From Anaeramoeba ignava BMAN (lineage: Eukaryota; Protista; Anaeramoebae), in NCBI GenBank assembly GCA_028826165.1, contig JAPDFW010000107.1, forward strand, positions 144,496 through 208,495: a DNA stretch of 64,000 nt, given 5' to 3'. The stretch's first letter is position 1; every line of letters starts with the position of its first letter. Of this stretch, positions 45,801 to 62,166 are shown one piece after another. Below the pieces are notes generated by a model. It ran no database searches. It was given only the letters and a program-made list of their open reading frames with translations, and was not told where the DNA came from. The position numbers and the translations under genes were made by a program.

Positions 45801-48800
45801 ATATTTTATATTTCTAATTATTGAAATATTGAGAATTGATTTCTGATTTAATTTTTTTTTGATTTCTTAATTCTTCTCATTATTATATCTTGAAATTATT
45901 ATTTTATTGATTGATAATATTTCTTTTTTCTTTTTTTTCTTTTTGATTAATATTTATTTTTGTTTTTGAGATAATTTTTATTTTAATTTAATTTTAATTT
46001 TTTATTTCCAAAAAAAAATGATTTATATTTCTTATTACATTATTTTGAATATTAAATATGATTTGAGTATTAAATCATATATGTTTTTTTTTCAATTTTA
46101 TTTGTTTATTTGATTAAAATATCCTCATCTTATTATATATTTTTATTTCCTTTCCTAATTTTTTTTCAATTATTTAATTTATTTTATTCATAATTTGATA
46201 TTGATTTATATATTTCATATATTCTCTAATAACATTTAATTCTTCTATTTTTAATTTATATTAATATTTTTATTATAATTGTTAATTTATTGAGTATATT
46301 TATATATATATATATATTATTTGATAAATATTTTTATTCCTCTTTGATTTATTTCTTAAATTAATAATAATTTTCAAAATATATTCTTTTTCTCAAATAT
46401 ATTTCTTGTATTATGGAAATTGTTATTCTTTATTTTAGAAATATATTTTTAAATTTATTTCTAAATTTTTTTTTTGAGTTTTATTTATTCTATTTAATTA
46501 ATTAATATTAATAAATAAATTATATTTTAAATTTAGAATTGATTTATTTTTGTGAATTTAATTCATTTTATTATTTCAATTTTCTTTCTTTTTTAATATT
46601 TTTAAATAAATTTTGAATATTTTTTTTATTTGATATTTTATTCTTTTCATTTTTAAAATTTCAAAAAAAAAAGAGTTAATATATTATTTTTATTTTTATT
46701 TTGAATAATTCCTAATAGATGAAAATTGATAATATTATTAATAATATCAAATATATTAAGAAATGATTTTCTGATAATTAATTTATATAAATTTAAAATT
46801 TGTAATATTTTGTTTTAATTAATTTTTAATTTAATATTTTTGAATTTCTATATTTAATTTGATTTTTTTTTTCTTTAAATTTATATCTATTTCCTAATTT
46901 TATAAAAATAAGAAAAAAATTTTGATATTTCTTGTTATAAATTATTTATTTATTATTTTTATTATAAATTTTTAAATAAGAATAATTAACACTTTTATTT
47001 ATAAATTATTCAAAATCTTTTTATTTTTATTTGAATAATTTTAATTTAATTTTAATTTAATTTAATTTAAAGAATTACTTTTTTTTTGTATTATTTCTTT
47101 AATCTTATTTAAAATATTATTTATCATATTTTTTTTATTGATTAGATTGAATATTTTCAATTTCTTTCTTTCTTTCTTATTAATTAATTAAATTTAATTT
47201 TTTTGATAAATTATTTTTATTATTTTGATTTTTTTTTTCAAATTGAATTTATCTTGTTTTGTAATTATCTCTTATCTTAAATATTTTAACTAAATAAATA
47301 TAAATATAAATATAAATATAAATATAAATATAAATATAAATATAAATATAAATATAAATATAAATATAAATATAAATATAAATATAAATATAAATATAAA
47401 TATAAATATAAATATAAATATAAATATAAATATAAATATAAATATAAATATAAATATAAATATATAAATATAAAAATATATAAATATTTCATCTTATAAT
47501 TATAAAAATATAAAATATCTCTATATATATTCATAACCTTATAAATATAAATATATATTATTATAAAATATCTTCAATTAATTTAATAATTTAATAAATT
47601 TAAATATATTTATTAAATTAAATTAAATTAAATTAAATTAAATTAAATTAAATTAAATTAAATTAAATTAAATTAAATTAAATTAAATTAAATATATTTG
47701 GAAATTAATGGAAAATCTTAATAAATATACAAAATTTCCCCAATTTAATTATTTTATTTTTTTTTCAAAAACAAAAAACAAAAAACAATTTAAATCTAAT
47801 CTTTTCTTTTTAAATTAAAAATAAATAATAAATTAGAGAGTAATTTTATTTATTATTTTAATTTGATTTTCAAAAAAAACACAAAAAAATATTATTTCAA
47901 AAAAAATTATAAATTTTTTTAATTTTAAATAACAAAAAAAAATATAAGAGAAAATTATTTAAAATATAAATTAAAGAGAAATTTATTTTTTAATTTAATT
48001 TAATTTAATTTAATTTAATTTATTATTTCAAAACAAAAAAAAGTGGTCTCCAGTTCATTATTTATGTAGGAATGAATCAATTACATTTGATATGATTAAA
48101 TTATTAGTTGATAATGGAGCTAATTTTAAATTAAGTGGAGTAAGTTTTTAATTAATCAATTAATTTATTTTCTTTTTCAAAATAATATTAATTTTATAAG
48201 AAGATATTTCATTTCCATTTTTAAATAAACATAAACATAAACATAAACAATATTTTTATTTCAATTATTTTATTAATTAAAACAAAACAATTTTGAATTT
48301 TTTTTAAAATTAATAAGAATATAATCAAAAAAAAAGAAATAAATTTTAATTATAATTTTAATTATAATTTTTATTCCAAAAAAAAAATCAAAATAATATT
48401 TATGTTTATTATTTGATTATTATATTTCAATTTATTTTAATCAAAAATAAATAAATTCAATTTCAAATTCAATTTAATATTCAATTATTTTCCAAAAAAA
48501 AGAATGTTTTCTTTTTAATTCATTTTTTTTTTAAAAATTTTCAACTTTAAAAATTTGAAAAGAAAAAAAAAAGAAAAAGAAAAATTTAAAATTAATATTT
48601 AATTAATTAATTATAATTCCTCTCTCTTTTTTTTATTTTGTTTTTATTTTATTCAGATTTACAAATTTAATTCAATTTTGTTTTATTCTCAATTCAAATT
48701 CTTCTTTCTTTTTTATTTTATTTTATTTTATTTTATTTTATTTAAAATTTTGGATATTAAATCAAGAAAAGAAATTTATTAATTTATTAATTTTATAATT

Positions 48801-60800: not shown

Positions 60801-62166
60801 AAAAAAGAAAGAGAAATTTTTTAATATTAAATTTAACTTTCTAAATTCCCTAAGTTGAAATTAATTAATTAATTAATTAAAATTTGATATTGAATTATAA
60901 TATAGATACATAATTTTCACTTATTATTATTATTGTTCTTTTTTTCATAATTTAATCAAAAAAATATTTTATATCATTAATATTATATAATTTTGAAATA
61001 TCAAATATTTAATTTATAATAATTTTATTAATGATATTAATTATCAAATTTTTTATTTTTCCAAAAATAAAAATAAAAATAAAAAATTTGTGTTTTTTCT
61101 CTCAGATTAATATCCTTGTTTATAATATAAAAAAAAAGTTGTTTTTTGTTTTGTATATAATTACATTTATTACATAATTTAAATGTGAAAAAAAAATGTT
61201 CAAAATTTAATTTCAAGAGTTTTTGTTTTGTTTTGTTTTTTTGATTTAATAAATTTAAGATTTAATTAGTAAATTTTTGGAATTAATTAATTAATTAATG
61301 AATGAATATTGGAATAAAGAATTTTATGAAAAAAAAATGAATTTGGAAATATTGTATAATTTTATTTGGAAAATAATTATATAAATAAGATAATATTAAT
61401 ATTATCAAGAAAATATTTATTTTTATATTTATTTTTTTATTAATTTATATAATTATTCAAATTCTTCTATTTGAAAAAAAAAAAGAATATTAAATATTTT
61501 TTTCTCTTACTTAAAAAATAATTTCAAGATTTTACATAAACAAAAATAATAATAATAATTATAATTAAATATTTAATTTCAGAATATTCAATAATTTGAT
61601 TATCAATTTCTAAATTTTGATTATTTTCTTCTTAAATAAATTCTAAATTTTCCAAGATTTAAAAAATTTTTTATTTCAATTAATTTTTATTTTGGATTAT
61701 TATTATAATAATAATAATAATAATAATTTATCAAAAAAAAATTGATATAAAAAAATATTAATTTATTCAAGAAACAAAATAATATTTTTATAAAGAAAAA
61801 ACAAATTATTTAAATTTTCTTTCTTTTTAATTTTAATTTTAATTTTAATTTTAATTAAAAAAAAACTTTAGTATGTAACAAAAAATTGATTTTTAATAAT
61901 AAATAAATAAAAATTTTTTTAATTAATTAATTAATTGTTTTTATTTAAAATATATTTTTGATTTTTATTCAATTTAATAAAATAATATAAGGATGTAAAA
62001 AACAAAAAAATAAATAGAAATAATTTTAATTTTTTTTTGATTTAAAAAACAAAAACAAAACAAAAAAAAGTATACACCTTTACATGATTTATGTCAAAAC
62101 ACTTCAATTACAAAAGAGATGATTGAATTATTATTTGATAAAGGAGCTGATTTTCATATTCAAATT
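33838..62166 (+). CDS. Ankyrin-repeat gene assembled from one-repeat phase-0 exons plus 3-nt microexons; start and end not identified
   Basis: Reconstruction: NEGNK|[32 protein letters not shown]|K|D|G|[33 protein letters not shown]|K|D|G|[11 protein letters not shown]...LNLQD|K|F|G|[29 protein letters not shown]|[22 protein letters not shown]|KKE|[34 protein letters not shown]|K|Y|R|[32 protein letters not shown]|(variable)|[32 protein letters not shown]. Every piece is bounded by AG and GT, and all lengths are multiples of 3. Confidence 0.85.
34109..34204 (+). CDS. Ankyrin exon (96 nt) [32 protein letters not shown], preceded by candidate 15-nt exon 33838-33852 (NEGNK)
   Basis: TTTAG|GAA...GAT|GTATTT; paralogous to exon 41699-41800. 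Confidence 0.8.
37464..38262 (+). other. Microexon triplet 1: AAA (37464-37466), GAT (38178-38180), GGA (38260-38262) = K-D-G
   Basis: ATAG|AAA|GTATT, ATAG|GAT|GTAAA, AAAG|GGA|GTAAA. Confidence 0.85.
37478..39948. repeat. (AAAATC)n arrays inside the K-to-D microexon introns (37478-38172 and 38680-39948)
   Basis: Directly visible hexamer arrays, partly degenerate. Confidence 0.9.
38365..38463 (+). CDS. Ankyrin exon (99 nt) [33 protein letters not shown]
   Basis: AAAG|AAA ACA CCA ATT CAT...CAA GAT|GTAAAT. Confidence 0.88.
38666..40032 (+). other. Microexon triplet 2: AAA (38666-38668), GAT (39952-39954), GGA (40030-40032) = K-D-G
   Basis: Same contexts as triplet 1 (duplicated cassette). Confidence 0.85.
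40135..40233 (+). CDS. Ankyrin exon (99 nt) [33 protein letters not shown]
   Basis: Copy of 38365-38463 with ATT versus TTT (I/F). Confidence 0.88.
40514..40698 (+). other. Microexon triplet 3: AAA (40514-40516), TTT (40599-40601), GGA (40696-40698) = K-F-G
   Basis: TTAG|AAA|GTAAA, ATAG|TTT|GTAAA, CAAG|GGA|GTAAA, spaced 85 and 97 nt apart. Confidence 0.87.
40780..40866 (+). CDS. Ankyrin exon (87 nt) [29 protein letters not shown]
   Basis: AAAG|AAA ACT CCT TTA CAT...GAA|GTAACA. Confidence 0.85.
41383..41800 (+). CDS. Linker exons 41383-41448 ([22 protein letters not shown]) and 41533-41541 (KKE), then ankyrin exon 41699-41800 ([34 protein letters not shown])
   Basis: All are AG/GT bounded and phase 0; GADWN ankyrin motif present. 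Confidence 0.8.
43928..44952. repeat. ~1-kb (AAT)n microsatellite
   Basis: Nearly perfect trinucleotide run; it is the source of the poly-L ORF. Confidence 0.98.
47295..47460. repeat. (AAATAT)n microsatellite
   Basis: Directly visible. Confidence 0.95.
48044..48139 (+). CDS. Ankyrin exon (96 nt) [32 protein letters not shown]
   Basis: AAAG|TGG TCT CCA GTT CAT...GGA|GTAAGT, a canonical donor. Confidence 0.88.
54105..55573 (-). mobile_element. ~1.47-kb DNA transposon of the PIF/Harbinger-ISL2EU (IS5-related) group with terminal inverted repeats
   Basis: Left end AGGGATTGGGATGTATTTGGT...TCCGCTGA; right end (reverse complement) AGGGATTGGGATGCATTGGT...TCCGCTGA. Subterminal TCCGCT motifs. Flanks TATT|element|ATTA are compatible with a short AT-rich target-site duplication. 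There is a sharp GC step relative to the flanks. Confidence 0.92.
54366..55352 (-). pseudogene. DDE transposase (HTH_Tnp_4-like + DDE_Tnp_4-like) interrupted by two in-frame TAA codons
   Basis: [24 protein letters not shown] (HTH), then [28 protein letters not shown] and RIVIEH. Both ORF-track pieces are in the same frame, separated by TAA at 54992-54990 and 54983-54981. Confidence 0.88.
57290..57562. repeat. (AAATAT)n microsatellite
   Basis: Directly visible. Confidence 0.95.
62071..62166 (+). CDS. Ankyrin exon (96 nt) [32 protein letters not shown]
   Basis: AAAG|TAT ACA CCT TTA CAT...ATT|GTAAAT; TPLH and KGAD motifs. Confidence 0.9.

Follow-up and report, generated by a model that had tools for sequence, protein, structure and literature searches.

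Results

The array and its host gene

The 64,000-nucleotide stretch of DNA analysed here (the window; contig JAPDFW010000107.1 of Anaeramoeba ignava BMAN) carries a gene for an ankyrin-repeat protein in which two 96-nt repeat-body exons, A (48044–48139, + strand, phase 0; Pfam Ank_3, E = 7e-4) and B (62071–62166, + strand), are separated by an array of candidate exons of one codon each. There are exactly 13 AG/NNN/GTAA units on the + strand of the intervening 48140–62070, as first noted and with the codons then listed: R (unit 1, 51519–51521), W and A (units 2 and 3, 51646–51783, starting at 51646 and 51781), a TGA stop (unit 4, 52648–52650), H (unit 5, 53016–53018), P, D, W, D and F (units 6–10, 56279–56718, starting at 56279, 56396, 56517, 56590 and 56716), and Y, Y and D (units 11–13, 58165–61994, starting at 58165, 61872 and 61992). 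The minus strand of the same region has one such unit, spacers of other lengths (0–12 nt) give 0–1 matches on the + strand, and locally shuffled sequence gives a mean of 1.3 units and a maximum of 6. The entire window holds 24 units where 4.7 are expected. The 14 introns of the array are 70–3704 nt long and about 90% A+T. Every unit is phase 0 and any subset keeps the frame, as read directly from the sequence, and no ankyrin body exon is found between the units by motif scan, exon enumeration, a profile hidden Markov model (HMM) built from the exons of this gene, or tblastn queries from about 157 relatives; both points stand as first proposed.

The first exon of the host gene (29869–30868, + strand) encodes a RING finger (Pfam E = 2.5e-5, under the family cut-off) and a protein kinase domain (Pfam Pkinase, E = 3e-46), and reads in frame into the downstream exons. 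In our exon model, which is inferred from splice sites, there follow eight exons (30936–32549, + strand) that encode a linker and a coiled region together with an ARM-like domain, and the model runs for 655 aa with 0 stops, in frame as far as the first ankyrin exon. Motif scan, exon enumeration and profile HMM then locate five ankyrin body exons (34109–41800, + strand, starting at 34109, 38365, 40135, 40780 and 41699). The repeats match Pfam Ank families (exon A and paralogues), and models of paralogues match solved ankyrin and DARPin chains with E values to 1e-21. The four ankyrin junctions upstream of the array have exactly three single-codon units apiece, reading K-D-G, K-D-G and K-F-G at the first three. 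The units K (41960), Y (42080) and R (47837) lie 5' of exon A (41960–47839, + strand), and the first (K/E) and third (R/K/D) of these differ among gene copies.

Units at ordinary junctions and across the genome

The NCBI models of paralogues, in the ankyrin models that we checked, omit all units and are left with repeats of 32 aa. Alignment of these models to solved ankyrins leaves a gap of 3 residues at each junction, and relatives with unbroken open reading frames (ORFs) have mostly 35-aa repeats. The ordinary gap is therefore 3 residues; about 1–3 residues had first been assumed for the gap between exons A and B. Because of these three observations, three consecutive 3-nt exons appear to be structurally needed at ordinary junctions. 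We take this as the best indirect indication that the units are genuine exons, included in runs.

Pattern counts across the genome, all made on the A. ignava BMAN assembly (42,843,398 bases in 147 contigs), point in the same direction. The strict AG/NNN/GT pattern yields 1857 units of 3 nt and 171 of 4 nt, which puts the 3-nt units in excess by about 1,700. We prefer the 4-nt count as a baseline because a reversed-pattern control gives about 810–830 for 3-nt and 4-nt units alike. Where two units are closely spaced, the second is TAA or TGA in 0 of 549 pairs, with about 30–40 expected, and is a 2-nt unit in 5 of 549.

These counts bear on whether the units are exons at all. It might be supposed that the units arise by chance or serve as motifs within introns, and that the NCBI models, which leave out every one of them, are correct in joining body exons directly. 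This seems to us very improbable, as 13 units are present where 1.3 are expected, on a single strand and at a length of 3 nt only, stops are absent and the flanks are conserved, and direct joining would remove the hairpin of every repeat.

The array in paralogous genes

A scan of the genome for like arrays in paralogous ankyrin genes, which had been suggested as a check, finds them at the identical A-to-B junction. We read three compact paralogues over about 3 kb each. The paralogue on contig C93, near 125.6–126.8 kb, has 13 units at this junction and that on C2, near 8.3–9.4 kb, has 10, neither with a stop. The introns of both arrays are 56–85 nt, and a modal intron of 76 nt is given for A. 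ignava in the supplement of PMC11550330. About a dozen further paralogues have A-to-B gaps of 0.6–1.2 kb, with space for roughly 8–14 units. The order of units is conserved, with R/K first, W at position 4 and aromatic-aromatic-D last (permutation p = 0.03, 0.014 and <0.001), and about five positions of the array are conserved among distant paralogues whose introns no longer align. Of 13 pattern matches, 11 have D, N or G as the last unit ahead of a B-type exon. The N-termini of the family are modular: RING-kinase in the window, kinase in model P0027, BTB in the C79 model P0153 and ARM-like in P0015.

Long arrays also occur elsewhere in these genes. At loci L008, L010 and L014–L023 the next junction (B to C) has 5–8 or more units, which differ between copies, and in the C42 and C79 copies of the window locus the gene goes on beyond exon B with another array and one more body exon. 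In C25 and C57, six units lie ahead of the N-cap repeat.

The conservation of the array has consequences for how many units are used. The original prediction was that about three of the 13 units enter each transcript, in a Dscam-like choice among 220 combinations, and make a canonical 3-residue hairpin. Such a choice would suit the canonical gap of 3 residues, the fit of the first (R/K) and last (D/N/G) units to the usual first and last positions of the turn, and the in-frame stop of the window copy. However, about five conserved positions exceed the capacity of a 3-residue turn, stops are absent family-wide, and precisely at the long-array junctions the canonical D is replaced, by G at the end of exon A and by I, Y or V in exon B. 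It was further supposed that full inclusion would break the fold, but although inclusion of all 13 units gives a 45-residue repeat, repeat spacings of 41–44 residues, resulting from long hairpin loops, are present in unbroken relatives, and TRPV ankyrin domains have long finger loops (PMC2654082). The choice of three units thus appears improbable.

The stop at unit 4 had likewise been taken to imply that the units are alternatives. TGA stands in the window copy at a position where C93 and C2 carry TGG (W), and the compact pairs do not end in TAA or TGA. As the TGA is an exception of the window copy, it provides no argument for alternative units. Decoding of TGA as tryptophan or selenocysteine was considered and ruled out, since the 549 other pairs lack TGA and a 2-nt unit takes its place in close copies. 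The window copy appears to be a bloated recent duplicate, and its TGA may mark a null or truncating allele or a unit now left out in splicing, or may be an error of the consensus sequence.

Variation of unit codons between gene copies

Six other contigs carry parts of the array locus at 90–96% identity, with counterparts of exon A that are 97–100% identical. In pairwise comparison, bases differ at 17% of positions in unit codons, 1.6% in introns and 1.5% in body exons, and at 0 of 624 in the 10-nt splice flanks. The pairs, which are not independent, show 20 unit changes where base composition predicts 2.4; multiple alignments, one anchor of which is weak, require a minimum of 18 unit-codon changes where 1.2 are expected (Poisson p about 2e-15). 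Unit codons change about 14-fold faster than the surrounding DNA, all of the changes are non-synonymous, and two or three bases are altered in 5 of 10 sense changes.

The changes are unevenly placed along the array and fall mostly in its middle. Units 1, 9 and 11–13 are constant in close copies (unit 1 in four of them, with R/K in distant paralogues), and units 2–8 and 10 are variable. Units 2 and 3 read W/L/W/V and A/I/A/A in close copies. Unit 4 has a 2-nt version (GA) in C79 and C25 and is deleted in C42, and unit 5 is F in C25 and has a 2-nt version in C79. Units 6–10 read P/P/K, D/N/N, W/D/(AAT, with the acceptor G lost), D/D/D and F/Y/(2-nt) across copies, such that unit 8 is represented by three unrelated triplets in three copies. 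Indels of 1 nt cluster on the units; elsewhere there are only two single G/C deletions in 11.8 kb. The C79 copy has three 2-nt units and the lost acceptor in this array, and its next array has one unit of 4 nt and perhaps one of 2 nt. A deletion has removed units 4–11 from the C42 copy, which keeps five units in frame.

Copies of the array are also found in other arrangements. Locus L013 (contig C142, about 108800–111000) is an inverted and displaced copy of units 6–10, reading P, N, D, D, Y and lying far from its own exon A, and we take it that array duplicates therefore undergo rearrangement. Long tandem arrays of another kind are seen at C1:409300–413100 (−), C137:610600–612100 (+), C1:942300–942800 (−) and C1:1057900–1073200 (−), where units of ~75 nt differ in the triplet between AG and GTAAA and have introns that are nearly identical. 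Triplets at C1:1058–1073 kb are mostly ATN, TTG, CTT and GGG, and their phase may differ. Among the matches listed, none is an ankyrin match near these C1 and C137 arrays. Since their introns are near-identical and their codons differ, it follows that units can multiply by tandem duplication.

The diversity measured here resides in DNA, between gene copies. Uniform neutral decay of pseudogenes was considered as its cause and ruled out, as the changes are concentrated 14-fold on unit codons and the flanks are unchanged. Selection, targeted codon replacement and an assembly artefact of mixed copies could each give rise to it. Positive selection would cover the sense changes but not the indels or the stop, for which targeted mutagenesis, tolerance through skipping, or consensus errors would then have to be invoked.

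As to the artefact, the variable codons, the stop and the units of 2 or 4 nt might in part come from long-read consensus or polishing over collapsed near-identical copies, with the real genes being all sense. The 2-nt units can be read as one base lost from a short run of G or A at the acceptor, and the copies are 90–96% identical, several near contig ends, with many homopolymer indel differences. Yet an artefact confined to triplets still requires real heterogeneity at the triplets, an identical 2-nt unit occurs in two contigs, and whole-codon sense swaps with intact flanks are atypical of sequencing error. We find this explanation rather doubtful, and it would bear on the stop and the indels and not on the existence of the array.

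Other features of the window

A PIF/Harbinger-type DNA transposon lies in an array intron (54104–55574, − strand). It has a transposase split over two ORFs (DDE_Tnp_4, E = 4e-24; HTH_Tnp_4, E = 1e-4) and terminal inverted repeats, and is common to the C42 copy, with an empty site in C79 and C25 marked by synteny breaks; the DDE_Tnp_4 transposase, the terminal inverted repeats and the empty site all agree with this class of element. A gene on the opposite strand of the array was considered and rejected, as that strand has transposon ORFs only.

Upstream of the array, a second N-cap-like ankyrin exon with a short helix exon before it is seen at 41383–41800 and resembles the start of the short paralogue P0049. 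The second N-cap-like repeat, at 41699, may reflect an internal duplication, a fusion, or a second, adjacent gene. At 37285–40250 a repeat cassette (three units and a body exon) is tandemly duplicated, and the intron that separates the first two units contains (AAAATC)n tracts. Elsewhere in the window there are an ORF whose product looks, on inspection by eye, like an FHA-RING (CHFR-like) protein (5724–7184, − strand), a 12-nt repeat array (9816–12856), two A+T-rich satellites (19613–23538, 27 copies of a 144-nt unit; 23659–25007, 4 copies of a 314-nt unit) and about 1 kb of (AAT)n (43927–44971).

Discussion

The comparisons described above suggest that the locus looks like a receptor loop diversified in DNA, and not like a splicing library from which three codons are picked. 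We propose, with a probability that we put at about 0.57, that most or all units are included and form a finger loop of 10–13 residues between repeats A and B. We infer the splicing, inclusion level, fold and ligand of the units from what is observed directly, namely the units themselves, their conservation in the family and conserved order, the absence of stops, the hypervariability of their codons and the modular N-termini.

In this model the units would be true 3-nt exons that are spliced in order, with the short introns removed singly such that most or all codons enter the mRNA. The resulting loop of 10–13 residues would be shared by a family of modular proteins with RING-kinase, BTB or ARM-like N-termini. 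It may resemble the loop of a complementarity-determining region (CDR), in which a fixed stem (the R/K start, W at position 4 and the aromatic-aromatic-D/N end) holds a hypervariable middle as the tip. Diversification would take place in the DNA, by codon replacement far faster than in neighbouring DNA, and with one residue per phase-0 exon, duplication, deletion or replacement of a unit would alter the loop by whole codons and keep the frame. The loop could then act as a ligand-recognition surface under arms-race selection, the proteins being recognition receptors. The original suggestion of receptor diversification survives in part: candidate single-codon exons lie at the beta-hairpin and would diversify a binding surface, while a choice of about three units by splicing as the source is not supported.

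Several observations weigh against near-constitutive inclusion. The window copy has an in-frame TGA, and about six frame- or site-breaking units in the C79 copy are hard to square with strict inclusion. The conserved order of units is also expected from descent alone. Several introns of the window copy, at 3.3–3.7 kb, are close to the annotated maximum for the species, 4168 bp, and searches of homologous and representative proteins for transcript-derived proteins with units returned only annotated models without them.

Some of these points would be accommodated if skipping were partial, with the stem units constant and subsets of the middle units skipped to give loops of 5–13 residues per gene. 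Dead units (stop or 2-nt) would be tolerated because skipping transcripts survive. As all units are phase 0, skipping keeps the frame, and the stop, 2-nt and 4-nt units are concentrated mid-array in otherwise intact genes with conserved splice flanks; alternative splicing is also known for micro-exon genes of Schistosoma (PMC10526429). However, partial skipping does not explain why there are no stops in 549 compact pairs. In the compact copies the introns are of an ordinary minimal type and their canonical sites are strong, and no docking or selector-like structure turned up, although no search was aimed at such structures. We consider partial skipping a possible but clearly less probable account than near-constitutive inclusion.

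More speculatively, triplets may be replaced between fixed splice signals by a DNA-level diversifier, such as short-tract conversion among AG/NNN/GTAA units or error-prone repair aimed at the units, and this may act within a clonal culture, with variable skipping perhaps adding loop-length variants. A diversifier of this kind would fit the replacement of two or three bases in 5 of 10 sense changes, the clustering of 1-nt indels on triplets and the unchanged flanks. We think such a mechanism unlikely; if true, a protist would have a CDR3-like repertoire of receptors resolved to the single codon.

In the literature that could be searched, with most subscription journals beyond reach, we found isolated 3-nt exons only, no description of 10–13 consecutive one-codon exons, and no paper linking Anaeramoeba to microexons. 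Nor did we find a description of a genome with about 1,700 single-codon units over a 4-nt control that annotation has missed in the ankyrin models checked. Even if the units were simply included constitutively, they would probe the spliceosome on exons far below its footprint. The unit codons are the fastest-changing bases of the locus and are sited on the ankyrin binding loop. In a protist that eats bacteria and houses symbionts, this family is for that reason a concrete candidate for variable recognition receptors.

Comparison with known systems

Dscam1 carries tandemly arrayed exons for a recognition surface; those of a cluster are paralogous and share one role, and one is chosen per cluster. 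The array described here is likewise a tandem series of candidate exons for a recognition surface, but its units are position-specific, mutual exclusion is unsupported, and the conservation and absent stops argue against a choice of fixed number. LoopDARPins are synthetic ankyrins with an extended hairpin loop as the interaction surface, and we know of no TRPV finger that is hypervariable or encoded codon by codon. The use of extended ankyrin hairpin loops as an interaction surface is what the array would share with both the TRPV fingers (PMC2654082) and the LoopDARPins (cited in PMC5777970).

The micro-exon genes of Schistosoma contain runs of very short exons (3–81 bp; PMC10526429) and show fast protein evolution with a high ratio of non-synonymous to synonymous change (dN/dS; PMC4350168), and their products are described in PMC10399815 as secreted, with at least some intrinsically disordered. 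Like them, the ankyrin genes have arrays of short, frame-preserving exons (13 phase-0 units of 3 nt; 10–13 in paralogues) and evolve fast, and the proposed role of the micro-exon genes, as an interface with another organism, can be likened to that of the array. Unlike them, the coding sequence here consists mostly of ordinary exons (kinase, ARM-like and the 96-nt bodies), in a model that begins with a RING finger. Micro-exon genes consist mostly of micro-exons and mix their sizes, whereas nearly all units here are one codon long and, within a folded ankyrin domain, occur only in its hairpin loop.

In brown algae, ROCO-LRR and NB-ARC-TPR genes have one exon per repeat, are under diversifying selection with high rates of birth and death, and are candidate immune receptors (PMC3341825, PMC11378527). 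The ankyrin family shares with them a repeat body per exon (96 nt), signalling domains, many paralogues and, in its loops, a 14-fold excess of non-synonymous change. The domains differ, being LRR or TPR with ROC-COR or NB-ARC in the algae and ankyrin with RING-kinase, ARM-like or BTB here. The algal genes shuffle or skip the whole repeat exon, whereas here the body is stable and single loop codons vary. The array is thus most like the one-repeat-one-exon receptor candidates of brown algae and the micro-exon genes of Schistosoma, and is a member of neither.

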